A stretch of 64,000 nt of DNA from Thalia democratica (lineage: Eukaryota). The stretch's first letter is position 1. Each line of letters opens with the position of its first letter. This document shows, in pieces, positions 21,542-62,300 of the stretch. The DNA lies in NCBI GenBank assembly GCA_965202585.1, contig OZ241829.1, forward strand, positions 72,912,001-72,976,000, in the 5' to 3' direction. The translations under genes were made by a program, and so were the position numbers. The notes beneath the pieces are model-generated. The model was given only the letters and a program-made list of their open reading frames with translations. It ran no database searches and had not been told where the DNA came from.

Positions 21542-21710
21542 CGTGTCATCATGAATCGCTCTCGTGTTGAATGACATCACAAGCGAATACCCACGAACGC
21601 TCGTGATTACAACATAAGTCATACTGAAAGTACGCGCGATTGAATGTACTTTCCAAGTGATTTTTAGAGCTGCGTTTCTAATTTGCAAGTCGTATCTTAC
21701 GACTATAAAA
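21542..21710 (+). promoter_or_regulatory. Promoter-like block, unit 1
   Basis: ATTTGCAA at 21681, GTCGTATCTTACGAC, TATAAAA at 21704; YY1-like CGCCATCTT downstream at 21872. Confidence 0.5.
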
Positions 21711-21738
21711 TGTAACGTTTCAAAACTTTGCTGAAAAC

Positions 21739-21808
21739 GCAAAAGCGGATTGTGACGTCACAAAACTTCTTCAAGCTGAAGTTTCGTGACGTCACAATCC
21801 GCTTTTGC
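21739..21808. other. 70-nt hairpin, unit 1
   Basis: Perfect 23-bp arms GCAAAAGCGGATTGTGACGTCAC / GTGACGTCACAATCCGCTTTTGC plus a near-perfect inner stem; loop TTCAAGCT. Confidence 0.8.
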
Positions 21809-22352
21809 TTCCAAAGCTGAAACAGAAGTTTAAAGCTGAAAGTTAAAATTTTTTTTACGCTCGATCACAGTCGCCATCTTTTTTTGCTCGAAGCATTTGC
21901 GCTTTAACTCATGTGTTGTAAAAATTTTTCGCAGTTTAAATTCCATTAGTTTTGTGTAGCATAAATTTTAAAACTAAAATGTTGACAAAAAATGTAAACT
22001 TAAACATAAGTTTGACACAACTTCAAATCAAATGATTATTTAATTTTAAAGCCTTGAGTTTGAAAAAATTAATAACAAGTTCTTGCTCTTTACAAAGAAT
22101 TTTTTTTACAAATTAAAGAAAAAAAGTCTGAACTGTTTTTAATAATAGAAAAAATATGTTGTGGTTTATGGATGTTAACCTAAGTAGTAAATTAAATTAG
22201 TATGAAATTTTCAAATTATACTTAAAACTTGTAACTTATGGTTCAAACGTTTAAGTGATTTTTTAAAACGTTGTTTAATGTTTTATTTATTAAAAAGTTA
22301 ATTTAAATTGACAGTTAACAAGTTTTTGTTTAACTACAATACTTATTTTCAG

Positions 22353-22414
22353 CCGAAGTAACTTGGATTGAACAGGTGGCGTTTGGAAAAAACAAAAGGA
22401 GTATTCACATTCTG
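22353..22414 (+). other. Exon-like cassette, 62-nt class
   Basis: TATTTTCAG|CCGAAG...CACATTCTG|GTTAGT. Confidence 0.55.
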
Positions 22415-23522
22415 GTTAGTTATAAATTGTTGTTTTACATATAATAGCTGATATCTACTTAGATTTAATAAAAGTGCTATCAAAATATTGTATTTTTCAA
22501 CAAATAGCTTTAAATTTTTTAAGCTCTAACAAGCATATTAAGATAATATTTATGTTGTTTTAACAAAATATCATATAATTTTGAACTTTGAATTTTTAAT
22601 TAATTTTCAATATTTGATATCAATGTTCATAATGCAGTTAGTCACTTTAAAAAAAATTAAATTTTCTAGTTTCCATTTGTAGTGAAAATGACACCTAAGT
22701 TTTCATATCAAAAAAATATACTTAACTGCATTAAACTTAGTTATAAATTCAGTGATCCATGAAAAACTTTTTCCAAGTTTTATATGTTTGAAAATTTCAC
22801 ATTACGTCAAACTATATTATATACAACAACTTTCTTTCAAAATACTAATAAATTTTAACTAACTAACTTACAAAATGTAGTTTAGAATATGGTCTTTTAC
22901 TATAACTTCTAAAATTTGTCCTAGTGTTAACTTATCCATATTTTTGTGAGGTTGAAAGCCAGATCTTTTTGTTATCCAGCTTTTCACAGTTAAAATATTA
23001 CAGCAAATATTACGTGTTTAAACTTTATGACGTAACTAAACACGTAATTCGAAAAAACTTAAAAAGTTTATTTAGTTTTGTAAGTTTTATTAAGTTTTGT
23101 AGTCACTATAGTTCATTTTTTCTAAAGTTTTATTATTTTTATAACTCAAAACATGTTTAGAAGTATCAGACCCATTTAACTAACTTCAAAGAAAATTTTA
23201 ATTAATTAAGTATAAATGATATAGACAATATACCAAGTTTAATAACTTCTACCAGTTATTATTTAAGTGTTAATTTTAACAACCTTTTAACGAAAACTTC
23301 TTTTTTTTTTAGGAGTTCATTTAGGTGCAACAAAAGTATTGTTTATTGTTTGAAACTGTTAAACGATTGTGTAACATAACTCTTGTTGAATATACTAACA
23401 GTGTGTAGGCTAGGGGTGGGGAACGTTTTTAATCGGCAGCGCTGATCCAGAAATTTAAGTCTTTTGGTTGCCGGAGCATTTCAAGTTAGTGATTTACCAG
23501 ATACAGTATCCGTATCCACCAG

Positions 23523-23587
23523 GATAACGATTTTGACGCTCATTAATCACGTCATCAGTGTTAAAGCAGCGAGGTGTAAATGATCTG
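23523..23587 (+). other. Exon-like cassette, 65-nt class
   Basis: TCCACCAG|GATAAC...TGATCTG|GTTAGT. Confidence 0.5.
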
Positions 23588-24845
23588 GTTAGTATACACA
23601 ACGTGCAATTGTGCATTTTAATACAGTATAAAAAAAATAAATAATTATTAATATAAAAAGTGTATATAAAATACTTAAGCTTTTTATTATCTACCTAACT
23701 TGTTGTAAATCGAAAGTCTTTTAAAAAGCATCATTAAAAACAGTGTTACTTACTATACTATCTTCAATCAAGCTTTTTACGTTAATAAAAACCTCATAAT
23801 CAACCTGATAGTACCTCTTTTTCAATCGTTTAACAAACAAAGCATAACAAAATTTATGTACTATATATATTTAAATTTCTGTAAAGCTTAATGCTATAAT
23901 ATGCAAATAGTTTAATTGTGTACTATTTTGTAAGTAGTTCAAAACTAATTTTGCTAATTAAATAGAAAAATATAACAATGAATATTGTATTACAGTTTGT
24001 TTTATACTTTTATTAGTGGTAAACACTTTTTAAGTTTCCAATTTTATTGTACTTTTTAACTATATTAAAGTTTGGAATAACTCATTCTCATATTCACACA
24101 CACGGTAGAATTATAAGAGTAACATAATTATGACTCCCTTTAAAATAAATCGCCAATTAAAATAAATTTTATTATCCTTCACGAGTTTATCATTTCTTTC
24201 ACTTGTTAAATACTAATTAATTATTCAGCTTAGCAACATTTTAATTTTTTGAAACATTGTGAAATAACATTGAAGACTTAATTGAGTTTAAGATGCTTTT
24301 ATGAAGGCTTTTATCACTTTTCTATAAATACCCAAAAATTTTGAGAAACAACCTCTTGGCTAAAATTTCAAAACAATATACCACATAAACAAAAATGAAA
24401 TGTATGTTTTTGTAGGCAGGTATAGCTGAAATAAGTTATTAAAATACTAATAGTCATTTTTTTTTTAAGTCTTTCAGAATTTGTTAAACAATTATGACGT
24501 CATAAGTGGGAAAAAACAAATTTTTCACTCAAAAAAAACCCGGTTGGCCAGAACTAATTATTTAAAATTGAATTTGCACAACTTCATATTTTTAGCTTGG
24601 TTTGAAGCTCTTAATGTGTAATATATTTGCTTATTGGCTAATAACCTTTTATTTCCATGTCGCTAGTTCAAGTGAGCAAAAATTTATTTAAGTTGTAAAG
24701 TCAAGATGCGTAGGTAAAACAAAATCGTTTAAAATTAGTTTTACGTTTCTCTTGCTTAACATTATACATATAAAAATGATTTACATGGAATAAAAATTTT
24801 TATTTTGATATTGATAGTCTTGTACAACAAAACTATACATTAAGG

Positions 24846-25194
24846 CAGGGGTCGGCAAACTGCGGCCCAAGGGCCAAATGCAGCCCTTTAAGTCAAAATT
24901 TGCGGCCCGCTAGCTCCTTTTTAGCAAAAAACATACGTTACAAAAACAATAAAAGTTAAAGATTTTGTAATTAAAACTTACATTTAGCATCTTATTTTAA
25001 TAAATACTCTTTATTAGTACTCTATTATTGCTTAACTTAGCATACTTTTGATCTTAATTGATATTTTTTTACTAATTACTAGAACTTTTTTTTTAAATAC
25101 GGCCCTTAAAGATTTTTTTATTAAATAGTGCGTCCCGCGAGCAATTTTTCCTAGGAAAATTGGCCCGCGAGTTACATAAGGCTGCCGACCCCTG
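24846..25194. mobile_element. hAT-superfamily MITE
   Basis: TIRs CAGGGGTCGGCA / TGCCGACCCCTG; 8-bp TSD CATTAAGG on both sides; empty site at 33344-33351. Confidence 0.92.
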
Positions 25195-25318
25195 CATTAA
25201 GGTCAATAACTTTTTTGTCATTATGAAACTAACCTAACAGAATATGTTGAGTATTACCTATTACAAAATGCTTTTGTTTTACTGATTTAAAAAGGTTTTA
25301 TCTAAAGTATTTCAACAG

Positions 25319-25396
25319 CCAGAAGTGAAGCAGCAATGACTTACTCAACTGGGCAATGACGTCACCAGAAAAATGAATCATCAGTGAGATGCTCTG
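25319..25396 (+). other. Exon-like cassette, 78-nt class
   Basis: TTTCAACAG|CCAGAA...GCTCTG|GTTAGT; branch-like ACTGAT upstream. Confidence 0.55.
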
Positions 25397-26700: not shown

Positions 26701-29700
26701 GAATAACAACCGTTGTACTAACTTTTTATAATTTATTTGTTTTAAAAGTAGTTTTATAGTTGTAAGTTGAAATGTTTATAGATCAAGAAAAACTATGTAC
26801 ACATTTTAAATACTTTAGGTTATAGTTTATTTATACTTTAAAGCTTCTTTGAAAAAGTTCAACACTTATTAAAATTTGTTTAATTATTTATAATATTTTT
26901 AAAGTTTTTCTGCTTTTACGACGACATACTGACAAGAATAATAAAAGTTAGAATGAAAAATATTTTGACCTTCATAGAAAGCCCTCAATTGAAAATGCTA
27001 TTAAACATAAACTATTTTTTATTTTTTGTGAAATTTTTAATTCTAAAATTTACAACTTTGAGGAAGTTTTCCAATCGTTTTAATTTTTTTTTAAGTAAAG
27101 AAACACCTCTGCGAAACTCGATAAACTTATTTTTATTTGTACCTTACCACTCATGCTAAACCTAAGTATAAGTGTGTAATTATCTGACAGATGCCAAATT
27201 TTATATTAACTAAGACTTCGGCTTTAATTGATTTAGTAAGTGTAGTTGATATTTGATAAATTATATTAGCATTCAAATAGATACCTTTAATATATCAGGA
27301 AAATTATAATCATATATTAAAAATTATTTTAGAGTTAAAATAAGTGATATGAAAATTAGTGATAACTAAAAAGATACTTACTAGTTAACTAATATAAAAG
27401 TTTTATATAAACTTTAATATATTTTTATTAGTTATTGAATTTATATCAATTTAGCTTCTACATTTAGAAAAACAAAGCCATACGAACTTAACTAAATTGT
27501 TGTTAGAAAATTCTCTGAAATTAGAATTAAAGCAGTATAAAACATTCTATTTAAAAACTAACAAATATACAAGAAGTTGTCAAAAATGAGAGTACTCTCT
27601 TTTGCACATACTTCATTCAAGTTCATAGTATTGCATCTGCAATCAGTTTTACATTTTATATAAGTAGAGTTTTTCATTGAAACATTATTAATTTTATACT
27701 AAAATTATATTAAAATTAAATTAATTTTGTTTAATTGTAAAATTATTTATTAAGTTTGAACTTGTGCAAAAATAAAGCCTAACTGACTTTATGCAAAATT
27801 GACCCATTACCTAAACAAAAAAAATCTCTCAACAATTACTTTTTTATCTGTAGTGTAGCTTGTAAAAAGTTAAAAAAATGTTGTCTTTTCATAAATTTGT
27901 AGATTTTTGTTCATCATCAATAATCTCATTACTTTTATTTATTTTTATTTTAGTGCAATAGATATATAGATATTTTGAAATGGTAAGTAAGCAGTTTTAT
28001 TAAAAGCTAAATCATTTAATTGTAAACTTTTTAACACCATGAAACAAAAAAGGTTTGACCACTATTTAGATTTTCTATTTAGTGTAGTTTGGAATTATAC
28101 TTTTGAAAATAAAAATAATCATTTCTACAGCTATACAATTTATTTGTATTTAGCAGTGTTATCAACATTAACTTTGGTCTTATGTTTATAACAATATTCA
28201 ACATATAACTAAGTTTGACATTACTGAGGTCATACACTATACAGAATTATTGTTATTTCACGATTTAGTTGCTAACTATAGTAATATTTTATAATAAAAG
28301 AAACGCGCTCGATAATTAAGTCTAACGAAGTTTCGATTATTGAGTTGTATGTTTAAATTATAGTACACTTGGTAAGACTAACAACACATGATTAGCAATT
28401 TTCGATCAAATGTTTCGTTTGTTCTGAGCCTCTTAAATTTTTAAATCACCTTGTGCACTATACAAGTCTTTACAGCATCTAAAGCTTTGATTATTAAACT
28501 TTTTTATGATTAAACAAAACTTTGCTTTCAAAGCTGGAACAGCTGAAAAATTTTCAGATGAAGCTGAAAATCCCAAAGAACCTTACGCTTAGACTTATTT
28601 ACCATCTTTATGAACTGAAATGGTTTAAATTTATGCTTTTTTATATCTTTAGTATTAATTAAATACAAAATACAAACTTCAAAAAAATTGTTAAAAACAA
28701 TTTAAATGGTATGTAACAACTGCTAAAAGCAAAACGAAACTTTTAGTAACAAATTCAAATCCAATTTTTACTGGTTTTAAAGCTCTTAAATGCTTTGTTC
28801 TGTAACAACCATGAATAATAATATTTATCTTCTAATTAAAAAATCTAATTAGTAAAAAAACTAACAATTTATAAAAAAGTTTTTTTTATTCTAAAAATTT
28901 ATATTGATAGACATGGCTATTTAATAAATTATCCTTTAAATTTATTTATATTGCTATTTAAAATAAAAATATCAATAGCTCGTCTACTTTTTCATTAACC
29001 AATTAAGCAAAAAAGCTGCAAGATGTTTATTCTTAAAAACACATTTAGTGATCTGCATACCTTAAATGACATAAGCAATAAACAGACTTATTAGAAAATA
29101 GATATTTTAACATTTTTTCCAATTTTATAGATAAAATACTGCTGTATCATTTTTATCCTTATTCGTAAAATTTATTAGTAGGTAAAAAATCTAAAACCTT
29201 TCTGCAGCAGTCCACCTGTAAAACAGCTAGAATCTTATCAGAGTTGATATGTTTTATCAACAGTTATACAAACTTTACTGGGGTTGCTCAATTAAACATT
29301 ATGAAATATAATGCTTACGTACGATTTATAATTTAGGTATATAAAAGAGTCCAAGACTATAAACATCCTAAAATTAATTTTTTTAATTTATTTTACCTTT
29401 AAACTATAAGGCAAACACAGTCAGTTTAAACTAACTTGTACAAGTATTACATAACAACTTGATTAAAAACTTATCTGTGTCACGTCGCTTACTTATGAAC
29501 TAATATAACTTACTTTATAATTTTTTTTAACTTATGTTCATTATTTGCTTAAATTTTTAAAAAGGACAGTTTGTTTAACATGCTATTATTAAAACATTGC
29601 ATTTAATACTTAAAAAGATAAAACGTAACCTAAAACGGAAATATATTTATCATTTCAATTGCAAATTAAGCACTATAAGTAATTGAACCATGAAACGATT

Positions 29701-29713
29701 CTCTCAACTTCAA

Positions 29714-29881
29714 CGCGTCATCAATTTGCTCTCGTGTAAAACTACGTCACGACAAATTATCACGAACGCTCTCGATGACTTTACAAATTAGTCTCCGGTA
29801 GCTGCGTCCGTTACAATCGCTTTCCAGCGAATTGGCAGTTATTTTGCTTCAATTTGCAAGTCGTTCAAACACGACTATAAA
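29714..29881 (+). promoter_or_regulatory. Promoter-like block, unit 2
   Basis: CpG-rich block, ATTTGCAA, GTCGTTCAAACACGAC, TATAAA at 29876. Confidence 0.5.
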
Positions 29882-29923
29882 TCATATCATTTAGAAACTC
29901 GGCTGGAAGAAGTGATGTTGTTG

Positions 29924-29976
29924 TGTGACGTAACAAACAGCTTTCGCTTGCAAAGCCGAAGTTTTGATACGTCACA
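29924..29976. other. Hairpin, unit 2
   Basis: TGTGACGTAACAAA / TTTGATACGTCACA plus inner GCTTT/AAAGC. Confidence 0.65.
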
Positions 29977-30537
29977 AAAGGCTTTTGCTACTAAAGCTGA
30001 AGCAGCATTTGTAGCTTAAATTATAACTTATTTACGCTTGGACATAGTCGCGAACTCTTTTTATGCTTAAGCTCATATCTTATAAATCCCTTTTGAAATT
30101 TTATCTTCAATAATTTAATGTAGAATATAATTGGAAAATGATGTTAATAAGAGTTGTAAAATTAAACGAAAGGTTTGAATACAATTCCATAACAAATAAT
30201 GCTTAAACTTTATAGCCTTGAGTTAGAAAAACTTGTAACATGTGTTTGCTTATTTTACAAACAAAAAGCAAATTGATTTTATTACAAATAAAAAAAGTCT
30301 AAGGTATTTTAATAAAAAATTAAAAAGTTGTGGTTTATTGATGATTACCTAAATAATAAAATATGTTGTTGAACTATAAAACTTTTAAACCTTATTTAAA
30401 ACTTTAAAACTTGTGATTTATAGTTCAATTACTGTAGCAAATAACCTTCTTAGTGGCTATTTTAAACATTTTTTAATGTTTTTTTATTATATATAAAACT
30501 AATAATCAACAAATTTTTGTTAAACTAATTTTTTTAG

Positions 30538-30599
30538 CCGAAGTAACATGAATTGAATCAGTGGAGTTTATATACAACAAAAGAAGTATTCACATTCCG
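30538..30599 (+). other. Exon-like cassette, 62-nt class
   Basis: TTTTTTAG|CCGAAG...ATTCCG|GTTAGT. Confidence 0.55.
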
Positions 30600-31690: not shown

Positions 31691-31755
31691 GTTAACACTT
31701 TTGACGCTCATTAATGACGTCATTGGTGTTAAAGCAGCGAGGTGTAAATGATCTG
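31691..31755 (+). other. Exon-like cassette, 65-nt class
   Basis: TTCACCAG|GTTAAC...TGATCTG|GTTAGT. Confidence 0.5.
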
Positions 31756-33466: not shown

Positions 33467-33544
33467 CCAGAAAAGAAGCAGCGATGACTTACTCAACTGG
33501 GCAATGACGTCACAAGAAAAATGAATCAGAAGTGAGATGCTCTG
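33467..33544 (+). other. Exon-like cassette, 78-nt class
   Basis: TTTCAACAG|CCAGAA...GCTCTG|GTTAGT. Confidence 0.55.
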
Positions 33545-34860: not shown

Positions 34861-36985
34861 GAATAACAATCGTTGTACCAATTTTTTTATAATTTATATA
34901 TTTTAAAAGTAGTTTTATAGTTGTAAGTTGAAATGCTTGTAGATCAAGCAAAACTATGTACATATTTTAAATGCATAAGGTTATAGTTTATATGTACTTT
35001 AAAGCATCTTATAAAAAAGTTCAACACTAAATCAAAAATTTCTTTATTATTTATAATATTTTTTTAAGTTTTTCTGCTTTTATGACGACATATTGACAAA
35101 TATAATGAAAGTTAGAAAAAAAAATATTAACTGCTTTGACCTTACTAAAAAGCCCTCAATTGAATGTGCCATTAAATATAAAATAGTTTTTAAATGTTTC
35201 GTAAAATGCTTTATTCTAAAACTTACAACTTTGAGGTAGTTTTCCAATTGTTTTAATATAAACAAATTACAGAATATTTTTTTTGAACTTATTTTCATAG
35301 AATTTCTCAAATTTAGCTTTATTAACCTCTCGACCATATTATACAAAGTAATTTTAGATATTTTGAATATTATTTTTAAGGTTGAATAATTGTTTTATAG
35401 GAAAGACAGCACAAGGTGAAGGCTGATGCAACAAAGGAGAACATTTACTACAGAAGGGAGAATTGGACACTTCCGAAGAATTCAACATTTTACTAAGTTT
35501 CACATTACTGAGCTTATACACTATACAGAATTATTGTTATTTTACAACTTAGTTGCTAACTATAGTATTTTTTTACAATAAAAGAAATGCGCTCGAGAAT
35601 TAAATCTAACTAACCTTCGATTATTGAGTTGTACTATTAAATTATAAAAACACTTGGTAAGACTAACAACACATGATTAGCAATTTTCGATTAGGTGTTT
35701 CGTTTGGTCTGAACCTCTTAAATTTGCGCTATACAAGTCTTTGCAGCATATAAAGCTTTGATTGAAAAAAACGTTTATGATTAAACAATACTTTGCTTTT
35801 AAAGCTGAAACAGCTGAAAAATTTTCAGATAAAACTGAAAATCTCAAAGAACCTTACGCTTAGACTTAACTACCATCTTTATGAACTGAAATGGTATAAA
35901 TTTATGCTTTTTTATATCTTTAGTATTCAATAAATGCAAAATATATACTTCAAAAAAAATGTTAAAAACAATTTAAATCGTAAATTACAACTGCTATATG
36001 TAAAACGAAACTTTTAGTAACAAATTCAAATCCATTTTCTCACTGGTTTTAAAGCTCTTTAATGCTTTGTTCTGTAACAACTCATGAATAATAATATTTA
36101 TCTTTTAATCAAAAAATCAAATTAGTAAAAAAAACTAACAGTTTATAAAAAAGGTTTATTTTATTCTAAAAATTTATATTGATAGACATGGCTATTTAAT
36201 AAATTATCGTTTAAATTTGTTTATTTTGCTATTTAAAATAAAAACATCAATAGCTCGTCTACTTTTTCATTAACCAATTTAGCATAAAAGCTGCAAGATT
36301 TTTATTCTTAAAAACACATTTAGTGATTTACATACCTTAAATGACATAAACAATAAACATACTTATTAAAAAATACATATTTTAACATTTTGTACAACTT
36401 TATAGATAAAATACCGCTGTATCATTTTTAGCCTTATTCGAAAAATTTATTAGAAGCTAAACAATCTAAAATCTTTCTGCTGCAGCCCACTTGTAAAACA
36501 GCTAGAATCTTATCAGATTTGATTCGTTTTATCAACAATAATCCAAACTTTACCGGGGTTGCTCAATTAAACATTATGAAATATAATGCTTACGTACGAT
36601 TTATAATTTAGGTATATAAAACAGTCCAAGACTATAAACATCCTAATAGCAATTTTTTAATTTATTTTACCTTGAAACTATAAGGCAAAGACGGTCAGTT
36701 TAAAATAACTTGTACAAGTATTACATAACAACTTAATTAAAAACTTATCTGTGACACGTTACTTACTTATTAACTAATATAACTTACTATATATATTTCT
36801 TAACTTATGTTCATTTTTTGCTTAAATTTTTAAAAAGGACAGTTTGTTTTACATGCTATTATCAAAACATTGTATTCAATACTAAAAAGATAAAACGTAA
36901 CCTAAAACGGAAATATATTTATCATTTCAATTGCAAATTAAACACTATAAGTAATCGAACCTCGAAACGATTCTCTCAATTTCCA

Positions 36986-37155
36986 CGCGTCATCAATTTG
37001 CTCTCGTGTAAAACTACGTCACGACAAATTATCACGAACGCTCTCGATAACTTTACAATTTAGTCTCCGGTAGCTGCGTCAGTTACAATCGGTTTCCATC
37101 GGAACTGCGGCGTTATTGTTGAACAATTTGCAAGTCGTTCAAACACGACTATAAA
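36986..37155 (+). promoter_or_regulatory. Promoter-like block, unit 3
   Basis: Same block; TATAAA at 37150; YY1-like motif at 37319. Confidence 0.5.
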
Positions 37156-37197
37156 TCATATCACTTAGAAACTCGGCTGGAAGAAGTGATGTTGTTG

Positions 37198-37246
37198 TGT
37201 GACGTAACAGCTTTCGCTTGCAAAGCCGAAATTTTGTTACGTCACA
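37198..37246. other. Hairpin, unit 3
   Basis: TGTGACGTAACA / TGTTACGTCACA plus inner GCTTT/AAAGC. Confidence 0.65.
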
Positions 37247-37768
37247 AAAGGCTTTTGTTACTTAAGCTGAAGCAGCATTTGTAGCTAAAACTTCAACTTA
37301 TTTACGCTTGAACATAGTCGCCATCTTTTTTACGCTTAAGCTCATGTCTGTAAATCGTTTTTGCAATTTTATTTTCAATAATTTAATGTAGCATGTAATT
37401 GGAAGATTATGTTAATAAGAGTTGCATAATTAAACGAAAGGTTTGAATACAATTCCTTATCAAAAGATTTTTTAACTTTAAAGTCTTGAGTTCGAGAATT
37501 TGTAACAGTGTTTGCTTATATTACAAACAAAAAACGAATTGATTTTACTACAAAAAAAAAAAATAATAATAGAATGATAAAAGTGTTTCGGTTAATTGAT
37601 GATTACCTAAATATTAAAATATGTTTATGAACTATAAAACTTGTGACTTATTGTTCAACCACTGTCGCAAATAACCTTCTTAGTGGTTTGTTTAAACATT
37701 GTTATATTTTATATTTATTTATTATAAAATTAAAAATAAACAAAACTTTGTTAAACTAACTTTTTTAG

Positions 37769-37830
37769 CCGAAGTAACTTGAATTGAATCAGTGGAGTTT
37801 GGATACAACAAAAGAAGTATTCACATTCTG
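37769..37830 (+). other. Exon-like cassette, 62-nt class
   Basis: TTTTTTAG|CCGAAG...ATTCTG|GTTAGT. Confidence 0.55.
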
Positions 37831-38934: not shown

Positions 38935-38999
38935 GTTAACGATTTTGACGCTCATTAATGACGTCATCGGTGTTAAAGCAGCGAGGTGTAAATGATCTG
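38935..38999 (+). other. Exon-like cassette, 65-nt class
   Basis: TCCACCAG|GTTAAC...TGATCTG|GTTAGT. Confidence 0.5.
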
Positions 39000-49000: not shown

Positions 49001-49397
49001 ATGCCTACGTACAATTTATAGTTTAGGTATATAAAACAAACCAATACTATATACATTCTAATAACAACTTTTAATTATTTTTACCTTTAAACTATAAGGC
49101 AAACACAGTCGTTTTAAAATAAGTTGTACAAGTATTACATAACAACTTAATTAAAAACTTATCTGTGACAAGTTACTTACTTATTAACTAATAAAACTTA
49201 CTTTATAATTTTTAGCTTATGTTCATTAGTTGTTTAAGTTTTTAATAAGGAAAGTTTGTTTTACATGCTATTATTAAAACATTGTATTCAATACTTAAAA
49301 AGATAAAACGTAACCTAACACTGAAAATTTTTCTCATTTCAATTGCAAATTAAGCACTATAAGTAATCGAACCATGAAACGATTCTCTCAACTTCCA

Positions 49398-49567
49398 CGC
49401 GTCATCAATTTGCTCTCGTGTAAAACTACGTCACAACTAAATATCACGAACGCTCTCAATAACTTTACAATTTAGTCTCCGGTAGCTGCGCACGTTACAA
49501 TTTGTTTCCATCGAAACGGCGGCGGCATTGTTGTACAATTTGCAAGTCGTTCAAACACGACTATAAA
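49398..49567 (+). promoter_or_regulatory. Promoter-like block, unit 5
   Basis: Same block; TATAAA at 49562. Confidence 0.5.
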
Positions 49568-49637
49568 TCATTTAGATTCTCTATCTCTATTAGATTCATA
49601 TCATTTAGAAACTCTGCTGGAAGAAGTGATGTTGTTG

Positions 49638-49690
49638 TGTGACGTAACAAACAGCTTTAGCTTGCAAAGCCGAAGTTTTGTTACGTCACA
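49638..49690. other. Hairpin, unit 5
   Basis: Perfect 14-bp arms TGTGACGTAACAAA / TTTGTTACGTCACA plus inner stem. Confidence 0.65.
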
Positions 49691-50217
49691 AAAGGCTTTT
49701 GCTACTAAAGCTGAAGCAGCATTTGTAGCTAAAACAACTTATTTACGGTTGGACAAAGTCGCTATTTTTTTACGCTTAAGTTAATGTCTATAAATATTTT
49801 TTGCAATTTTATTTTCAATAATTTAATGTAATTGAAAAATTATTTTAATAAGAGTTGCAAAATTAAACGAAAGGTTTGAATACAGTTTAATAACAAATGA
49901 TTCTTAAATTTATAGCCTTTAGTTCTAGAACTTGTAACAAGTGTTTACTTATATTACAAACAAAAAACAAATTGATTTAACTACAAAAAAAATTTAAGAT
50001 ATTTTAATAATAAAAAAAAAATGTTGTGGTTTATTGATGATTACCTAATTATCAGTTGTTGAACTATAAAGCTTTTGAATCTTACTTAAAAGATTGTGAC
50101 TTATAGTTCAACCACTGTAAGAAATAACCTTTTTAGTGGCTATTTTAAACATTGTTCAATGTTTTATTTTATACAAAATTAAAAATCAACAAATTTTTGT
50201 TAAACTAATGTTTTTAG

Positions 50218-50279
50218 GCGAAGTTACTTGAATTGAATCAGTGGAGTTTGGATACAACAAAAGAAGTTTTCACATTCCG
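50218..50279 (+). other. Exon-like cassette, 62-nt class
   Basis: TTTTTAG|GCGAAG...ATTCCG|GTTAGT. Confidence 0.55.
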
Positions 50280-53200
50280 GTTAGTTATGAATTATTAAAA
50301 TAAATACAGTAGCTGATGTCAATTTTGTTTAAATAAGTCTGCAGTCAAAAGTTTGTAAATTTTCCAACAAAAGTTATGTTTCAGCTTTAGGAATCACATT
50401 AGAATCATACTTATGTTCTTTTAATACGATATTGTAAGACTTTTAACTCGGAAAATTTGTGTTTTAATTTATTTTCAGTATTTAATATCAATGTCCCTAC
50501 TGCAGTTAGTCACATTTAAAAAATGAAATAATGTCAAACTTTCTATTTTCTATTTGTGGTGAATAACGACAGTTAAGTTTTCTTAACAAGAAAAATATTT
50601 TCAACTTCATTAAATTTAAATTCAGTGATCCATGAAAACCTATCTAATTTTTACACGTTTACAAACAGTTTCACGTGACGTCAAAAAGTATCATACAGTA
50701 ACTTTCTTTCATAATTTTAGTTTACTGAATTACATTTAATTAAGTTACAAAGAGCAGTTTAGAGTATGGTTTTTTACTTTCACTTCTGAAAATTGTCCTT
50801 GTGGATCTTAAATACAATAAAAATAACTTATATCTAGTTAAATGAGATTGAAGGTTGACTTAATTTGATAACTAAAAAAAGTTATGTACGAATTGTATTT
50901 AAATTTATTTAAAGCTTAATGTTAAAAAGTAAACAAGAACTTAAATTGTGTAACATTTTTTAAAAGTTTAAAACTAACTTCGTTTATTTAATATAAAAAT
51001 ATAACAATGACTACTTTATTTTTAGTTAGCTTTATACTTTCATTGTTGTTAAGCACTTTTTAAGTTTCTAATTTTATTGTCCGTTTTAACGTTTTACCAA
51101 GTTTGAAATAACTCATTCTATATTCACCCATGGTAGAAGTATAAGAAAACCATATTTACCAATCCTTTTAAAAAATATCGCCAATTACTATTTTATTGTC
51201 GTTCAAGAGTTTATATTTTATTTTACTTGTTAAATACTAATTAATTTTTTCTGCAACTCATTAGTTATTGCCTTCTGATAACCAAATCAACTTCAGGTAG
51301 CGATATCACCCACTTTAGAAACTGTAGTACAAAAAAATCCATACATTTAATACTACATATTGTATCAACTTTTTATTGTATTTTGATAAATTTTTATTTA
51401 TTTGTTTCCAGTTTAAGCGATATGACCTTCTTGAGAGAAATTTTAATAAGATTGAAAGGCAAGATCAACCTTTGGTAAAAATTTAATGAGTAACTAACTA
51501 TTAAAAGGTAGATTTTTAATAAATGCTGCTCATAAACATTAATCTTTTGCACATTCAGGTTTTCAGCTTAGAAACATTTTAATTTTTTGAAACATCGTAA
51601 AACAATTTTGTTTGAAGACTTAGACTAAAATGCTTTTATGAAGGCTTTTATCACTATGTCTTAAATACACTAAAATATTGAGAAATAATATCTTGGCTGA
51701 ATTTTCAAAACAATATACTACAGAAATAACAATAAAATGTTTGTATTTGTAGGAAGGTAGAGCTCAAATATGTTATTAAAATACTATTAGCCAAATTTTT
51801 TTAAGGCCTTTTAGAAATCGTGAAACAATTATGACGTCATAAGTGAAAAAAAAATAAAAATTTATCAAAAATACACCCAGTTGGCGATAACTTATAATTT
51901 GAAAATGAACTTGCACATCTTCTGGTGTAAATTTTATACTTTAAGCTTGGTCTGAAGCCCTTAATGTAATAACATATTTGCTATTGGCTACTAACTTTTT
52001 TCTTCCATGTCGCTAGTTCAAGTGAGCAAAAATTTATTTAATTTGTAAAGTCAAGATGCGTAGGCAACACAAAATCATTTAGAATTTATTTTACGGTTTC
52101 CTTACTTAACATTAGACATATAATAATGCTTCACATGGAATAAAAACTTTTTATTAGAATATTTATAGTCTTATATGACAAAATATACAATAAGGTCTAA
52201 TAAGAGTTGAAAAAATAAGAATTACTATATAAACTACTTTAAGATGTTGCTCACCTCATCAAAAGCATCTAAAGGATTGTATAAATTTCAAAATGATTTA
52301 TTCTTACTTGCACCGTACACACAATGCATAACATAAACTGTGACCTTTTAATTAAAAAATAAGATTTTGAATATTATATAATATTAATAATTTACTTTAA
52401 CTGTCTTAGTTATACAACCTCAACATTCCTTTTTTATCAAATAATGTTTAAGTGTAAGAAAAAACATTATTTACTAAAGGTTTTTTAATGAGTGACGTTT
52501 ACCTATTAATAAATATTTTTGGTTAAAAAAAGCCAAAAAATAATGTTAGCTACTATTACATAATATAGAATTCAATACTTTTAAAAGTAGTTTATGTTAA
52601 CCTATCTTACATTTATCTCATATAGCTTTTATAATTTACGTTGACTAAAGCTTTACAAGTAAGCATTTTTGTTGCCATAGACGTTTCAACTTAATTAGTT
52701 TTACGAAATTGTTCTTATTTTTAAAACCTGTGTAATTAGCATGTTACTAATTAACTATTAAAAGTAGTCTTTTGCAAAATAAGCATTAGTGTGCTTTTAA
52801 ATTTGCTACCTTCGAATTTTCAAACTAGAAAAGCATAATATTTTATAAATACCACGATAACACGATAACATTTTTTGTCAAAGATTAGCTGGTTCGAAGA
52901 TATCTTCATAGAAGTATTCATTAATTTACTTTAAAAATATGAAACGATCGAGTAATGACTTATGTGGTAAATTTAAAACAGACTCAAACAAACTGTAAGC
53001 ATGTTCGTCTTAAATGAAACTTAGGAAAATTAAACGTTTTTTATACATACTTTTACATGATGACGTCATATAAAAAGACTTTTTGGACTTTAATATGCTT
53101 AAACCATAAGCATATATATCATTTAGCTGTCTGAAATTATTTAACACTAACTAATATGGGCTCTAATTTGTTTTATCTACAAAATTTAAGTTTGTTTTAA

Positions 53201-56200
53201 GCAAAGATTAAAAGTTACTTTATCTCTTTATTATAAGTTTCAAAACTATATGAAAAAAATTAAATCAATATTGAAAAGCTTAAACATTAGATTTATCCAA
53301 TGATTATTACTCAGGTGAAACTGTTTCACCTAGAAGGGTCTTCAGAGCATTAAGTAACAATGTTAATTTTCTTAATTTTTAGTAACTGATTTTTAGTATC
53401 AGGTTTTTTTTCGTATGAAACAGTGTCAGCCAAGTAAAAATCGTAGAACAATTTTTTTTTATATTTTGTCTCTTAACCATAAGTTTGAAGTTATAACGGT
53501 CGTATAACACAAAAATTTATGTACGAATTTAAACATAAAAGGTTATAGTTTTTTTTAACATTAAATTTTTTAAATCTCAATATCTACTCCAAAAATTGTT
53601 TTTATTTTTATTTTTTCACATTAAGTGTTTTCTGCGTTTATGACATTTTAATGGCATTAAAATAAAAATTTGGTACAAAAATGCTTTAACGCTCCTAAAC
53701 ATGAAAGTTCCTTTAAAGAAAAATAAATGTTAAGGTGTTTTGTTTAATTGTTTTTCTATAAATTAGAGCTGAAAGGTATGTTTCCGACCTTTCTTTGTTT
53801 TACAGTAAAAACACCTCTATTAAACTCAAAGTCAATTATAACTAAAAGTGTAGTCGTCTAAAATACAACAGAGTCAACTTTTCACTAACTTTATCTATAG
53901 TTGTAATAGAAAATGTTTTGTACAACTGTGTTGATTTATTGAACTTTTACTTTTTTTTTTTAAATTTATGACTAAGTATTTTTAGTTACAACGTCGATTT
54001 AAAAATTAAAGCTTTGTCGATCACCATTTATGTCGTTACTTTGATAAGAAAAAATATAAATACTGTATACGGTAGATATACATTTTTTTTATAAGTTAAG
54101 TTGTAGTTTTATTCAAATATAAATTCTTTAGATATGAGTACTGTGTAGTAACTTAAAACAATATTTTTTGATAATAATATACCATCCGTAGAATAATAGT
54201 GTCAGTTTTTACTTTCCAAACCATAAATAACTATTTCTAAATTTATAAAGTATTAACAAAAATGTGTTCAATATTTTATTGTGTATTTATATATTCGAAA
54301 AATGAATAAGAAACGTTACACTTTCTAGAAACTTTCTAATATTTACATAATGTTTACTACCTTATTAAAACTATTCAAAGCTATTAACAGTTAATTTTAA
54401 CAGATAAATCATTGCAAAACATATTCTCATCATCAGAACCAGACGAACAATCGGAACCAGCTGCAGAATCACCGCGCAAATCGTCATACTATTGTCAAGA
54501 TAAATGCTCAAAAAGAACGTGACGTCACTGAAATACGAGTTTAATACGTCATATATATAATTAAGTTAGTTATGTTTTACATTGATTTTAACTACCTGTT
54601 ATTATATTGTTTCTTTGAAGCCTTTTCATTTGTTGATAAATGGTATTCTGTTGCATGGGTAACAACTGGAATATCGGTTTTATTCCTGAGATTTGTGCGT
54701 TAAAAGGTCACTCCAGCCTTATAAGTCTTTCGCTAAGACACATAACTGATTAAAACAGTTACCAGATAAAAGTTTAATTTAATTTGGCGAAAGGTATTGT
54801 GCCAGGGGCATTATTTAGTCACTAGGAGCAGTTTTTGATTCCACTGGACAACCACTGCCTGCCTTAGGCTCGGCTTAGCCTTAGCAGTGGTTTTTTTCTA
54901 TTACTTCTATTACCTTTGCCATTGAGAGAATAGGGATAGCTGTATTAGTAAAAATGGAACTCAGAATAAGTCACCTGACATAAAAAAGAGAAAAGACACA
55001 TAATATTAATTAGGTAAGCTGGAATGTCCATACCATAACTACTGGTAAGAACACTAAAAAATAACTAATGCAAAAATAATGGTTAAAAAATGTAAGGAGA
55101 AGATGGAGTTTTAGTAAAACAGTCTTTTTTGTTTCGTTTTCGGTATTAGCATTTCATAAGGAGTATATTAAACACACCATTTTGATTACTTATATCTCAA
55201 AAATTACTCTTCTTTTTTTATGATAAAAATGTCAGATAGCTCAGATAAAACAATATTTGATTAAATTGTAAAAATCATGGTAGAACTCGCCCCATCCCCC
55301 TTAAATACTAAAAGTAAATCTTTAAAAGTTGTTGCAATTTATTTTTTAACAACTATGACGTAATAAGGGGAAACACCTAAAATTCAACTATTGGAAAATA
55401 TCGTTGGCAAAAATAGTGCGAAACTGGCAAATCATCTTCTGATGAAAACGAGATTTGAATTTGGTTTGAAGGTCTCAATGTAATAGAATATTTTCTTTTT
55501 AGCTATTAAATTTAATTTTTTATTTAAAAGTTGCTAGCCTACTTTGAGAAAAAAAATTATTTAAGGCGTAAAATTATTATCTTACGGTTTAATAAAAGTT
55601 AGATAGCTTTCAAAAATATACTTCAACAAACTAATAAGAAGAAGCGACAGAATCAAAATATTTAGAAAACGTGCAAACGTGCAGGTCAAGTAGCATGAAA
55701 CTAAAGCAGGCCAGCTAAGAGGTGAAGATAGAAAGTAAGTTGCACAACTTAGCTGGCGCGCGCAAAGAAACAAATCAGTAGGCTACACTAGCTGGTGAAG
55801 AAACTAAGATATTTTACCGAAAACAAGCTAAAAAGCTAACAACTCAAGACAAAAGCTTAAATTAGGGTATTTTTCAAAATAGTTAATTGTTTGCACCCCA
55901 TCACAAATACACTACGCATCACCACTAGCTATTAGTGAAGTTTTTCAATTTATTTATAGCCTACTTAAAATTATATTAAACTTGTTAATAAGCTTAAAAA
56001 AAAAGGAAAACCAGCCTTAAAATTAGAAACATTTGTTGACTTATAAAGTTTGCTTTTTGTGTTGGTATTTCTTTGTACGTTATCGTAGTTTGTGTGTCCA
56101 CCAAGTTTTAAAATAATTTAGGCTATGGTCTGTTTTTAGATATAAGTTTTGTTTTTTTACTTGTTTTAAAATATAGACAACTACATTTTGATAGCCATAT

Positions 56201-56811: not shown

Positions 56812-56899
56812 CCTAGTTGGAAGGTCATTAACAATGAAGTTGGAAAACTTTAAATAACAGTAGTGGAATTTCTTTGATATCAGAGTCTTTACAGTTCTG
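56812..56899 (+). other. Exon-like cassette (88 nt, diverged)
   Basis: TATTGTACAG|CCTAGT...CAGTTCTG|GTTAGT. Confidence 0.45.
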
Positions 56900-59159
56900 G
56901 TTAGTTATTACTTCTCCCTGATATATTATTACAATTTTTATATTGTTATAGATAATACAATAGATAATTATACATATATATAATAGATTTTGTATTGTAA
57001 ATAAAAGTATTAATTATATTTCAGAATAATAGCTCTTGTTTACTTATCTAAATTTTATTCAACAAAAAATTGTACTTTTAGCTTTTCATGAACGACAATA
57101 TATTCTAACCAATAAACAAACTAAATATATTTACTAATATTTCATGAGTGACTATAACGTAGATAAGGTTTTAATTTAAAGAGTCAAATATTAGTGTTGA
57201 ATATTATAGTATGATTGAATATAGTACTTTAACAAATACTCTATGCTAACCTGTTTTAGATTTTTCTCATATAACTTAGCTTATGTTGATAAAAGCTTTA
57301 TAAGTAAAGCATTTTTGTTGCTACAATCATTTAAGCTAAATGACTTATGATAAATTAAAATTATTTCTAAATGCTATATTCTTAGAATGATTTAATACAG
57401 TACGATTTAGAAGTAATACAGTACGATCATTTAAAATAGTTTGAAAAAGATTTTTTTACTTTAACTTTGCTTTAATCTTTACTAAAGCGCCCTTAAACAT
57501 GAAAGTTCTTTTAAGCATAAATTAGTATTAATGTGTTTTGTTCAAATATTTTTTAAAAAATTACAACTTTATGGTATACTTCCGGTCGTTTTAAGTTTCT
57601 TTTATTAGAAACACCTCTAACAAACTTTAAGTGCTTGTTTTTATTTGAACCCTGACCGTAAAGGCTTACTTGTGTTAAAATTAAAAATTTGGCAATGAAT
57701 TTAATTGTAGCTGATATTTAAAACATCAGCAACTTGATCACCATTTATACAAACAAATAGCTATAATATATCAAGAAACAACTTTTTAGTCCGTCGTTTC
57801 AACAAAAATTAACAAATATAGTTTGAATTATTTTTACAAAATAGGAAAACAGTATAAAACGTTTAAAACAACAAAGCAATAAAATTTATACTGAATTGTT
57901 GCTTGAAAATTCCCCGAAATTTAAAATTAAAACAGTAAAAAAATTTAAAAATAGTAAGTAATAAAAAAATGGGTAGATTTTTAAAATACAAGAGAGTCAC
58001 TTTTTCATTAATTTTATTTATGCTTTTAATAAAATAATTTTTGTACAACTATGTTTATTTACTTGTACTTGATTAAAATTTTAAATTGTTTATTTTAAAT
58101 AAATTACTATCTTTGTTTAATTACAAATTAGTTTTAAAAGTTAAAGTTTGTATAAAATTTATGCTTTGTTGATCAACATTTTTGTCGTTAATTTGATAAA
58201 AAAAATATTTATTTTATTGTATACGGTAGATATACATATTTTTTATAAACTAAGTTGTAGTTTTATTCAGTACTAAATTATTTAGAAATGAGTACTGTGT
58301 AGTAACTTAAAAAATTTTTTTTGATAATCATATATCATCCATATTATTTTAGTGTAGTTTTTACCTTCCTAACCAAAGTTAGTTATTTATAAATTAACAT
58401 AAATTTTAAGAAAAATATGCTCAACTTTTCGTTTTATATAAATATGTTTTAATAATGAACTGTGAATCACTGATACGCAAGAAACGTCTCTTAAATAGTT
58501 TCGTTATAGTTAATATCACTAATTATTACGTCACCGTGACATCCCTTAAACGCACGTATTTACATTATGAATTAATATGATCTTGCGGTGCTAAGCTTGG
58601 AATTTTTGCAGTAATCATGCGCTACTTTACATAACTTACAACTTTCAAGCTAAAGTTTGACGATCTGCTTTCTGCAGTGAAAACAAAAGTCATCAGCTTT
58701 TGTTATTGCTTAAATTATGTTATTGTATTCGCAGTATGAGTCATTACCAAAGTTCGCACTAAAAATTTGTAAGCAGGGTTTGTAGTATCACTTAATCAAA
58801 AATAAAAAAAAAATAAATAAAACTTATGAAACATTTGAGTATTTACTTCTTTCAATAGTTAACAGAACAGAACTGTCCCATTTAATAATATATAATTTTT
58901 CTATAACAAAAAATGAGTTTTTTACTGTATGCTGAATAACAAAATTTTCAAATTCAAAAGTTCAAATTACCAATTTATATTTTATTTAATACCGTTTTCT
59001 ACAACCGTTTGCTGTTCAAATTAAACATTTTTGATCTAAGTAATAAAAATGAGTTTAATTTATTAATTGTCATTTATTTATTTTTTATACTAGTTGCGAC
59101 ACTAGTGAAAGGTAAAAAAATCTCTCAAACACCTACACAACTTTGATTTATCTCAATAT

Positions 59160-59303
59160 ATGACGTCACCGAGACTCGCACAAACGCTTGCATTCACAAC
59201 ACAAACTCTAATCAGAGTGTCGGCGTGTAAGTTGAGTTAAATCTTATTTCATCATCTCTAGACTTTAAGTGCGTTTGAAAGTCGTTGCAAACACGACTAT
59301 AAA
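59160..59303 (+). promoter_or_regulatory. Diverged promoter-like block, unit 6
   Basis: TGACGTCA at 59161; GTCGT-7nt-ACGAC-TATAAA at 59281-59303. Confidence 0.4.
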
Positions 59304-62300
59304 TTCGAAACTAAAAGTAACTAACTGCTTCTAGCTGCAAAGCCAAAAACGGTTTGTTACATTACGTAATTTTTTCACTTGTTTTAGTTATTTTGAAGCC
59401 AATTTTTGAAATCTAACTTTAATGAGTTATTAATCGAAGACTATCGACGTAAGCTTTACATTTATCTATAATTGTTATTGAAAAACATATGATTATTATT
59501 ATTATTGATTATAGTTAGGCATTCATATGACTAACTTATTTTTAATTTCAAACTGTTTAATATCAATATCTTTTTTGCTTTGTGTTATTTTTTTTTTGTA
59601 TATCTTAACGTTTTCAGACTTCTATTGTTAAGTATTCTTATTTCAAAACACGATCAAATATTTTACTTTAAGCGTTGACTTTGTTTTTTTAACTCTTTGA
59701 ATAAGGTTTAATAGTAGTGAATTTTATTTTTAATTCATTTTAAACAAGTATAAACAAGTATGAAAAATGAGCTAAAACCTAAATGAAATATTTCATTGTT
59801 TGTGCTTAATGTTTTGTTTACTATTACTTAAAAAAAGTAATTTTAAAGGCTTAATACGGGCAAAAATATCTGTCTCGCGACGAATGTTATAAATTTAAAG
59901 CCAAAATATTTTTCATATTAATATATGATTATTACAAGAAAAAAGTGTAATCTTAATATAAGTTCTTTTGTTTATTTTTAAAAAGCTTATAAAAGATACT
60001 GTATACAATAAACAAAATGTATTTCACGCTCTTTTCATCAGTGGGACGTAGCAAAAATGAAAGACAATTTTCATTTTATATGGTAATAGTTGTAATAAAT
60101 CTTATTCACATACAAAGTTAATTACACAAAAAATTAACTAAAGTTAATTAAAAACTAAAACACCAAAACAAAGCATCAAGTAAATAAAGCAACACTATAA
60201 CCAAACTATTTTTGCAAACAAGCTTTTACACTTAAAATACTGATTGCCTCCATTTACATTAGTTTAAAAATATTAAAAAAGTCTTTCATTACTTTAATGT
60301 TTTTTGATTTGTTTTTTTTTTGTGTTGTCTAAATAAAACTACTTTGTCTTTATTTTGACTATAAACTCTAATTTTATCAGTAGCTGATCATTTTACTGCA
60401 TGATTTTTACCGCATTAAACATTTTTATTCTTGGATGGCTTCAGGAAACTTGTCAACATAAGATTTAAAAATTACAATCAGTATTACAGCCATTTGCACC
60501 TGAGTTTTTAAATAGAACACCGAATATATTTATAAAGTCTTTGAAATATATTAAAAAATAAAAAATAATTAAATTAAAAAATAAATAAAAATAAAACGGT
60601 TAAATTAAAAAATAAAAACTGTTATAGTTATAACCCCATTATAAAATTTAAGACGTCAGTTCATTTCCTCTAAACTAAAAAGATGTATATTATCTATAAT
60701 AATCTTTAATTGACTTATTTTAATAAGGTATTAAAGTAATATACTTTGTTAAAAGTCATTATAAGCGACATTATCTATATAAGTAAGTATAAAAATTGAT
60801 AACTCTAAATTAATTGTGAAAATGTAGTTTTAAATGTTTTGTGATGCTTAATATTAGAACAGTAGCAATAGTTTTATTTATTTTCTTTCAACATTGAATT
60901 CTAATATATAATAAGTATAATATATAATTTAATGTCTATAAGTGTTAAAATAATAAAAGGTTTAAAATATAATAAACAAATAATTATAGATATATAACGT
61001 AATAGAGATATAATATAGATATATATAATTTTACTACTATAAAAAATAAGATTTTTAAGAATCTGTCAAACAATTATCTCTTACTTATACTGACTAACTG
61101 GATGCAAGATGAAAAAAATTTGTTTCCTACGATTAGAAAATTTTCGAAAAAAAGTTCTAAAAGTTTGCTGAGACAGAATATTTTAAATTTTTCAATATAG
61201 TTTTATATAATGTTTTTGCTAAGCAAGTATTTACTACTTTGAAAGTAAGTTTGAAAGAAACCAATGGCGTCACAAACAAAAACAGTAATTTCGTTAAAGA
61301 CCTAAATATGACGTCACACAAATAAACTATGACGTCAGATAGAACTTTTTCTGCACTGACATCTTGGTTAGTGTACCATATTAAACTACATATATAAATG
61401 TTTTTGAACTCTTTGTGTATTCACCAACAGAGAAAGTGCAATTTAACTAAGGTGTATTCGTTGACGGTACACTCACAATTCAAACTCGATCAATTCCACC
61501 TTTTTATTATTATTTTGATGATTTTATGATTATATTGAAACAGCACATATCCAAAGAATCTTTGTTATATTTTACTTATTGCTGCGTGCAATTTATATTT
61601 ACTTATATTTATGCGCTATTCGTTGTTTTTTAACGTTTATTGTCGATAACTGTTTTGCGTTGTATTATGTTTTTCTTCTACTTTCTTAAACATTTCTACA
61701 ATATTAGGCTTCAAACGCGTTTTGATTTCAATATAAAATAGTTTTTTGCTTTTACTTTTTGTGCAAACTCGTGTATAAATAAGCTTAAAGTTTTTTATTT
61801 ATTTTTAAACATGTATGTTGTTTTTGTAGTATTTTTAAACAAGTACATACAAGTATGATCCACGAGAAAATACCTTGATATTTTTTTGTTTGTTTGAGCA
61901 CAATACATTTTTTAATCTTAATTTAAATAGAGCTAAACAATTATAAGGACTTTACGCTGAGCAACGAATGGTCATGTTGTAGAAATATCTTACCTTAAAC
62001 TTGAAAACTTTTATCTTCAAAACACCTTAAAAAATTAGTATAAAAGTATTAACTTACTTAACAAAAAATTAGTACGTAGTAGAGCTTAATAAGTGATTGC
62101 TTTAGTTTTATTTGTAAATTAAAAAAAAATTGTTTACACTTTATATGTTTTAAGTTAAGCGGCCTGTAAAGCCTATTTTTAACGACTACGCTCAGCGAAT
62201 AACTTTTTTTTTTGCCATCTACACAAGTTTTCAGCTATAAACTTAATCTATAAAAGTTAATGTTTTTATTTGTTTTTAGACTGAATGTGCTGCTTTTGTC

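Follow-up and report, generated by a model that had tools for sequence, protein, structure and literature searches.

A locus-confined tandem family of non-coding, splice-flanked units with CpG-rich, TATA-containing promoter-like modules in Thalia democratica

The 64-kb window analyzed here (C5:72,912,001-72,976,000, where C5 is contig OZ241829.1 of the 802-Mb Thalia democratica assembly GCA_965202585.1) carries a family of related tandem units, each pairing a promoter-like module with short, splice-flanked cassettes that lack coding capacity. Feature coordinates are given as positions in this window, which has a G+C content of ~25%. Direct-repeat analysis and self-BLAST of the window were used to define the units and identified five full units and one relic, arranged head-to-tail, 4-8 kb each, and sharing 60-96% identity. 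The motif ACGACTWTAAA occurs exactly six times in the window, once per unit (21699, 29871, 37145, 41148, 49557, and 59293), giving TATA-to-TATA spacings of 8172, 7274, 4003, 8409, and 9736 bp. A preliminary description of this DNA, made from its letters alone, had placed six related units at 21542-61372; they are indeed found there, and the family begins earlier, at ~12.2 kb, and includes an extra relic unit at ~56.3 kb. Genomic-DNA unitigs from one sample (two runs, ~40-55x depth) span the predicted exon-intron borders of the unit stretch and confirm the assembly locally.

Units 1-5 each contain a CpG-rich block, a TATA-like box, and a palindrome following it. The blocks upstream of TATA in these units are the top five 300-nt windows of the 64 kb by CpG density, with 18-24 CpG per 300 nt and observed/expected ratios of 1.6-1.9, compared to 0.89 for the whole window. 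With unit 4 as reference, the first (upstream) 100 nt of the block is another peak of conservation. All promoter-like modules lie on the + strand, at 21540-21900 in unit 1 (TATAAAA at 21704), 29700-30080 in unit 2 (TATA 29876, palindrome 29921-29979), 36960-37340 in unit 3 (TATA 37150, and the densest CpG 300 nt of the window), 40965-41345 in unit 4 (TATA 41153, palindrome 41198-41256), and 49380-49790 in unit 5 (TATA 49562, palindrome 49635-49693). The unit 6 relic (59151-59450, +) keeps a CpG-rich block and the shared TATA motif (ACGACTATAAA at 59293). In unit 1, the palindrome (21739-21808, +) has 31-nt arms and contains two copies of TGACGTCA, a palindrome of the cyclic AMP response element (CRE) type, and GTCGCCATCTT lies at 21870. 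Its arms are 97% complementary and would form a hairpin of -52 kcal/mol (z -13.6); the hairpins of units 2-5 have stems of 13-19 bp and z values of -2 to -4.8. The only hairpin part common to all 25 copies is a pair of CRE-like cores, and a single pair covaries (A-U 11, C-G 7, A.G 5). Because the common core amounts to two CRE-like sites with one covarying pair, an RNA role for the hairpin is unsupported. A hairpin RNA made by RNA polymerase III (Pol III) was also considered, and the T4 run within the hairpins of units 2-5 argues against it.

Up to three cassettes follow each module on the + strand. E1 (62 nt) is present in units 1-5 (22353-22414, 30538-30599, 37769-37830, 41794-41855, and 50218-50279), E2 (65 nt) in units 1-4 (23523-23587, 31691-31755, 38935-38999, and 42933-42997), and E3 (78 nt) in units 1, 2, and 4 (25319-25396, 33467-33544, and 44733-44810). 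In all of these copies AG stands immediately 5' and GTTAGT immediately 3' of the cassette. The AG is preceded by a pyrimidine tract in every copy of E1 and E3, and on the acceptor side the pyrimidine tracts and a branch-like CTAAC are conserved. With the 3' border of the cassette marked by a slash, each E1 ends ACATTCYG/GTTAGTTAT, and each E2 and E3 ends CTG/GTTAGT. TGACGTCA or a one-off variant lies inside each E2, and a perfect copy lies inside each E3. Spacing is nearly constant: E1 is opened by its acceptor ~650 nt downstream of TATA, and the E2 donor lies 1883, 1879, 1849, and 1844 bp from TATA in units 1-4. The differences among units are truncations. Unit 3, at 4.0 kb, lacks E3, ends after E2, and runs directly into unit 4, and unit 5 lacks both E2 and E3. 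The body of E1 is unrelated to those of E2 and E3 (z<1), yet the donor is common to them. The 7-nt word GGTTAGT occurs 19 times on the + strand of the window and 4 times on the - strand, where ~2-3 per strand would be expected from composition. Between E2 and E3, a possible fourth cassette was also noted (~24470-24507, ~43885-43922, and ~51807-51844, +); it consists of a long T tract and AG, ~35 nt containing TGACGTCA, and a weak GTG donor, and it is a local conservation peak (0.93). The promoter-like anatomy of units 1-5, the cassette lengths and borders, and the E2 donor distances are all as the preliminary description had them.

That description also held that the joined cassettes are closed and share no conserved ATG, and the cassettes, examined singly, agree with both points. 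On the + strand, stops occur in all three frames in every copy of E2 and E3 and in 3/5 copies of E1; with E2 and E3 closed in this way, no product that joins them would stay open. Of the E1 frames, the one open in unit 1 has stops in units 2-4, unit 5 is open in a different frame, and no ATG-led frame is kept across paralogs. With no start-led frame conserved, and with three of the four other E1 copies closing the open one, a micropeptide family, which had been offered as one possibility, or another protein-coding family is unlikely. On the minus strand, each of the unit 1 cassettes has an open frame; coding on that strand was rejected, as these frames are closed in the other units and there is no minus-strand donor.

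Older and more diverged members extend the family upstream. The array in the window starts at ~12.2 kb, and the older units there retain only the palindrome, the spacing, and the donor. Palindrome relics lie at ~10.5, 12.6, 15.0, 19.0, and 20.0 kb, and E1-like cassettes stand some 580-690 nt past three of them. An older E1-like cassette (13229-13293, +), 692 nt past a relic with TGACGTCA at 12601 and GTCGCCAT at 12666, ends ACATTCTG/GTTAGTTAT. Another, of 85 nt (15586-15670, +), lies ~620 nt past the relic at 15026-15073, and its paralog (19536-19626, +) lies past the relic at 19012-19056. The further relic unit near 56.3-56.9 kb has an E1-like cassette at 56812-56899 (+), with TGACGTCA 571 nt upstream at 56328. 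Some relics are reduced still more: 17295 (+) is a donor only, 20021-20070 (+) is a palindrome with two TGACGTCA and no downstream cassette, and 10505-10560 and 12560-12620 are similar to the latter. The unit 6 cassette (61267-61366, +), 2068 nt past the unit 6 TATA, contains two TGACGTCA and has the donor TTG/GTTAGT; it is weakly E3-like (z 4.3), with an undefined 5' border. Although the old units have only 56% identity overall, the block ACATTYYG/GTTAGTNAT is retained. When palindrome modules found independently of the donor were taken as the starting point, 8/10 had a GGTTAGT donor 570-700 nt downstream, and this count is the fairer measure of donor retention.

The word TGACGTCA runs through the whole array, occurring 27 times in the window against 0.19 expected (~140-fold). 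Its density is 3-8 per 10 kb in sister arrays and 0-2 in the gene cluster downstream. The 12-nt extension TGTGACGTCACA occurs 1210 times genome-wide, compared to 17 for the reversed control, and this 70-fold over-representation marks it as a real signal in the genome. TGACGTCA is present both in the promoter-like modules, within the post-TATA palindrome, and in the non-coding, splice-flanked cassettes E2, E3, and that of unit 6, where it is among the best conserved columns. E1 lacks it, yet is among the best conserved pieces of the unit.

A genome-wide search identified 17 copies of E1, 13 of E2, and 9 of E3, all of them on C5, in + orientation, and grouped within 0.5 Mb into four arrays (C5 72.455-72.469, 72.572-72.605, 72.666-72.676, and 72.934-72.962 Mb, the last being that of the window). 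Copies of the three cassettes and of the promoter are all contained in C5 72.45-73.62 Mb; this restriction to one locus means that the family is not a dispersed element, and a dispersed transposable element was rejected as its source since the copies are not scattered. Between arrays, whole blocks are 82-96% identical, introns included. The extended 17-nt donor ACATTYYGGTTAGTDAT gave 24 genome matches, of which 17 belong to the four + strand arrays and one is a - strand match within the inverted partner region; the remaining six are identical copies elsewhere with the appearance of an unrelated repeat. Outside the locus, the genome has no parent gene carrying these leader exons. Only two dispersed pieces lie inside the units. 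One is a fragment of a ~110-nt repeat (23410-23518, +) with at least 575 candidates genome-wide. In every unit that has an E2 it occupies this position and stops 4 nt short of the E2 acceptor AG, so the 3' splice region of E2 was built beside a transposon insertion. The other is an insertion resembling a miniature inverted-repeat transposable element (MITE), with G+C-rich inverted ends, in units 1 and 4 only (24842-25195 and ~44230-44610); its depth in the genomic unitigs is in the thousands, showing it to be highly repeated in the genome.

Conservation was assessed with unit 4 as reference against the other copies and equal-sized windows as background. Identity was 0.928 for E1 and 0.930 for E2 against a background of 0.841 ± 0.043, with ~1% of windows at or above either value; the E3 body (0.837) was at its background of 0.840. 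Column-wise values taken over 10-17 copies were 0.931 for the E1 exon, 0.874 for its acceptor, 1.000 for its donor, and 0.816/0.908 for its flanks; for E2, the corresponding values were 0.957, 0.923, 0.901, and 0.848/0.837; and for E3, 0.926, 0.970, 0.986, and 0.882/0.825. The direction of these differences fits purifying selection on exons and splice sites. The preliminary description had set against its own reading the case of cassettes that are parts of dispersed transposons and no more conserved than their flanks; E1, E2, and the splice sites speak against that case, and the E3 body, at background conservation, does not.

The arrays belong to a partly inverted amplicon of megabase size, which also scattered an exon of a housekeeping gene. 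This exon, richer in G+C and equipped with an ATG and both an acceptor and a donor, recurs around the arrays in at least 15 copies on C5, on the + strand at C5 72.48-72.98 Mb and on the - strand at 73.19-73.67 Mb. A profile built from seven copies was searched against 1.84 billion proteins and found 19 relatives, one of which (P0018) continues into a clathrin light-chain motif (Pfam Clathrin_lg_ch, E = 4.8e-4, 20.6 bits against a cut-off of 22). The recurring exon is a copy of exon 1 of the clathrin light-chain gene. The true gene (C5:71,287,3xx, +) is intact and lies 1.6 Mb upstream; 500 nt past its exon 1 is an exon encoding LEQLKLEPEKIRIWREENNKRLAEK, and the part alignable with the copies is the exon plus ~50 nt only. 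The copy in the window (8199-8343, +), 13 kb upstream of unit 1, has an acceptor and a donor and is broken, with GTG replacing the second ATG and an in-frame TAG. The next copy, ~2.8 kb past the window end and ~16 kb beyond the array, is also broken (ATA and a frameshifting 1-nt deletion). The copy downstream of one sister array (B) retains an intact ATG along with both splice sites, acceptor and donor. The exon-1 frame ends 18 codons into the conserved block that follows. In the window, a 242-nt block of ~45% G+C (8831-9072, +) lies 490 nt past the exon-1 copy, begins after CAACAG, and ends GAG/GTAAGT; it has four copies in the genome, with the first 84 nt common to all. A further G+C-richer patch at ~54430-54480 (+) translates as EPDEQSEPAAE, faintly like the exon-1 peptide QPDEPLEGAAE, and may be a decayed further exon-1 copy or chance. 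The cassettes themselves were considered as decayed clathrin exon-1 copies, and this was rejected as there is no significant similarity between them.

The sole long open reading frame (ORF) of the window (4764-6077, -; 437 aa) has a reverse transcriptase domain (RVT_1, E = 7.6e-10) followed by a GIY-YIG-like tail, the pattern of Penelope-like elements. Downstream, at C5:72.995-73.046 Mb, uninterrupted + strand ORFs of 370-650 aa form a tandem family whose members begin MIKLRLRFDVS... and have an N-terminal membrane anchor and internal repeats; this is an orphan cluster between the + and - halves of the amplicon. Pfam returned nothing for the exon-1 peptides, block 8831-9072, or these membrane-protein ORFs. 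No transfer RNA genes, and no Rfam families at gathering score, were found in the window.

Relatives of the exon-1 peptide also occur in environmental ORFs on JGI contigs of 1.0-3.2 kb, where junctions were read from peptides. P0001, P0011, and P0012 cross two exon-1 copies abutted at exon borders, and P0003, P0004, and P0013 pass from an exon-1 copy to a different short exon (Z) or from Z to a copy. Such exact exon-border junctions point to complementary DNA (cDNA) or processed DNA copies of spliced RNA. P0014 (JGI) and P0010 (ENA) carry a copy-8 nt-copy junction, which is impossible as a splice, the 8 nt being intron, and which indicates that DNA-level arrays exist in that environmental organism; P0014 and P0011 come from one 2509-nt contig. 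The environmental contigs represent either cDNA of a related organism or its processed DNA arrays. This genome contains no abutted exon-1 copies and no exon Z, and two metagenome scans gave no match. Back-translation of the 3' end of Z allows a match to AACATTYTG, the ending of the E1 family; this comparison was set aside, as it depends on codon guesses and is not evidence.

The anatomy of the units suggests a lineage-specific, locally amplified set of RNA polymerase II (Pol II) units yielding spliced non-coding RNA, a reading to which we give about an even chance. Each unit would comprise a CpG-rich TATA promoter module with paired, extended TGACGTCA palindromes, a 3' splice site ~650 nt downstream that opens E1, and E2 and E3 at fixed distances, bearing the CTG/GTTAGT donor. 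Tunicates add a spliced leader by trans-splicing. Given that no conserved first-exon donor (a conserved GT) was found between TATA and E1 across units, the simplest route would be for the E1 acceptor to receive the spliced leader, with the 650 nt discarded as an outron. The cassette donors would then join acceptors further 3', either the E1 of the next unit or the clathrin exon-1 copy ~16 kb past the array, and the outcome would be long, repetitive, multi-promoter non-coding transcripts or leaders. Every cassette is donor-ended and no terminal exon can be recognized, which makes it probable that the units are linked and are not six independent genes. What the preliminary description called a spliced lncRNA (long non-coding RNA) family thus stands as non-coding, locus-confined, and splice-flanked, with the independence of its six units doubtful. 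In a bolder and rather unlikely version, a salp-specific amplicon of megabase size would have its active core in the arrays and make long repeat-exon non-coding RNAs, stitching together many promoter-bearing units and exonized gene fragments, including clathrin exon 1, with TGACGTCA read at the level of the exon or transcript and not as protein code.

Several points weigh against transcribed, spliced Pol II units. Transcription, the splicing partners, and any function of the units are things we infer from the DNA. The missing first-exon donor, which trans-splicing would explain, is also a gap in the gene model, and no terminal exon or poly(A) site was identified for any unit. At the E2 acceptor the pyrimidine tract is poor and the transposon fragment is directly adjacent, and the E3 body shows no excess conservation. 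The copies are young (~84% mean identity) and kin by descent, so few independent events lie behind the excess at E1 and E2, which could come from gene conversion. The diverged E1-like cassettes were found through the donor motif, which makes the apparent invariance of the donor partly built in. The clathrin exon-1 copies flanking the window array are broken, as would be expected in a decaying amplicon.

Given the youth of the copies and their many broken neighbors, that last possibility is a serious rival, and we regard it as unlikely rather than remote. The arrays would then be the duplicated 5' end (promoter and untranslated leader exons) of one ancestral gene, spread by a megabase duplication that also took the clathrin exon-1 copies with it, and with no present role, any transcription would be noise, and splice-site conservation would reflect youth and gene conversion. 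The high between-array identity that extends into introns fits this account, as do the stops, lost starts, and frameshifts of nearby exon-1 copies, the varied truncation from unit 3 through unit 5 to the palindrome-only relics, and the background-level E3 body. It accounts less readily for E1 and E2 being in the top 1% for conservation, for old units at 56% identity retaining palindrome, spacing, and donor, for the CpG-rich block kept in every unit, and for the absence of a parent gene.

An account in terms of regulatory DNA only, which we consider improbable, would have the CRE-type TGACGTCA clusters act as enhancers or promoters of neighboring genes, with the AG...GTTAGT borders as inherited accidents. 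The concentration of the word in the window and sister arrays relative to the gene cluster, its presence inside E2, E3, and the unit 6 cassette, and the CRE-like core pair as the sole shared part of the hairpin are all consistent with it. A palindromic protein site would leave unexplained a strand-biased donor motif of 9-17 nt on unrelated bodies, nor would it predict conserved acceptor-side pyrimidine tracts and branch-like CTAAC, or strong conservation of the TGACGTCA-free E1.

A small-RNA host or precursor, also raised in the preliminary description, would make the exons matter for processing only, with an intronic small nucleolar RNA (snoRNA), a microRNA (miRNA), or PIWI-interacting RNAs (piRNAs) from a uni-strand cluster as the product. 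Tandem units with non-coding exons on one strand over 0.5 Mb, transposon fragments inside them, and the strong post-TATA hairpin of unit 1 fit such a locus. The searches of known classes in the window spoke against it and make it very improbable: Rfam gave no match at gathering score and, at E<=1, only three chance-level miRNA hairpin matches; no candidates with C/D boxes and a terminal stem were found on either strand; the post-TATA palindrome is the only conserved GC-containing hairpin, leaving none in the introns; and intronic conservation peaks lack RNA-like features. The T4 run in the hairpins of units 2-5 counts here too. Lastly, the cassettes could be alternative untranslated leader exons and promoters of a downstream coding gene. 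The candidates lie 16 kb away, where there is a small ORF derived from clathrin exon 1, and at 20-70 kb, where the orphan membrane-protein genes are found. We judge this the least probable of the readings. In its favor, all cassettes are donor-ended, the exon-1 copy past sister array B keeps its acceptor, ATG, and donor, and intact + strand ORFs do follow the window array. Against it, the exon-1 copy past the window array lacks an ATG and is frameshifted, the exon-1 frame runs only 18 codons into the conserved block beyond before it is closed, and the membrane-protein ORFs have their own ATG, are uninterrupted, and show no need of an acceptor.

We file the family as a lineage-specific tandem non-coding exon array, which is a known kind of locus. 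In mammals, SNHG14/116HG (SNORD116 and SNORD115), C19MC, and Rian/Meg8 carry an intronic snoRNA or miRNA in each unit as the functional product, and these host-gene arrays are driven mainly by one upstream promoter. The Thalia arrays resemble them in their one-strand, head-to-tail units, short non-coding exons, lineage-specific amplification, and splice sites better kept than drifting exon bodies, and differ in having a promoter-like module in every unit and no detected snoRNA or miRNA. Drosophila flamenco, a uni-strand piRNA cluster, is defined by its antisense transposon content and piRNA output; it has in common with the Thalia arrays its length on a single strand, internal transposon fragments, a Pol II promoter (predicted here), and a spliced, non-coding precursor such as the one proposed here, whereas the Thalia units are mostly unique sequence. 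The protocadherin alpha/gamma and UGT1A clusters, with long coding variable exons and known constant exons, also consist of tandem units in which a promoter (here a promoter-like module) accompanies a donor-ended exon that needs a downstream acceptor. In contrast, the cassettes here are 62-91 nt, non-coding, and mostly equipped with acceptors; the first of them begins only after an acceptor ~650 nt past TATA; and no constant exon completes a coding frame, the only downstream candidate being the broken clathrin exon-1 copy.

Two comparisons lie closer to home. Tunicate spliced-leader (SL) RNA genes share tandem repetition, a short non-coding exon, a conserved donor, and an upstream promoter of their own. 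In SL RNA genes the exon lacks an acceptor, an Sm site follows the donor, and repeats measure a few hundred bp; the Thalia cassettes have acceptors and lie in units of 4-8 kb, no Rfam SL match or Ciona-type leader copy was found in the window, and no Sm-like site flanked by stems was seen after a cassette donor. The clathrin exon-1 copies, a case of ampliconic segmental duplication that scatters gene fragments, share the locus, its mix of intact and broken members, and its strand logic (+ copies on the left, - copies on the right), and differ in having a parent gene elsewhere in the genome.

If the units proved silent, the locus would be an ordinary decaying segmental duplication. If they are transcribed, the locus would document a young amplicon scattering and exonizing a fragment of a housekeeping gene, the clathrin light chain, and the units would serve as a coding-free test bed for the enrichment of TGACGTCA. 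If transcribed as predicted, the units, numbering at least 17 and graded in age, with promoter, spacing, and splice sites kept while exon bodies drift, would provide a compact natural series for what a non-coding exon needs in a trans-splicing chordate.

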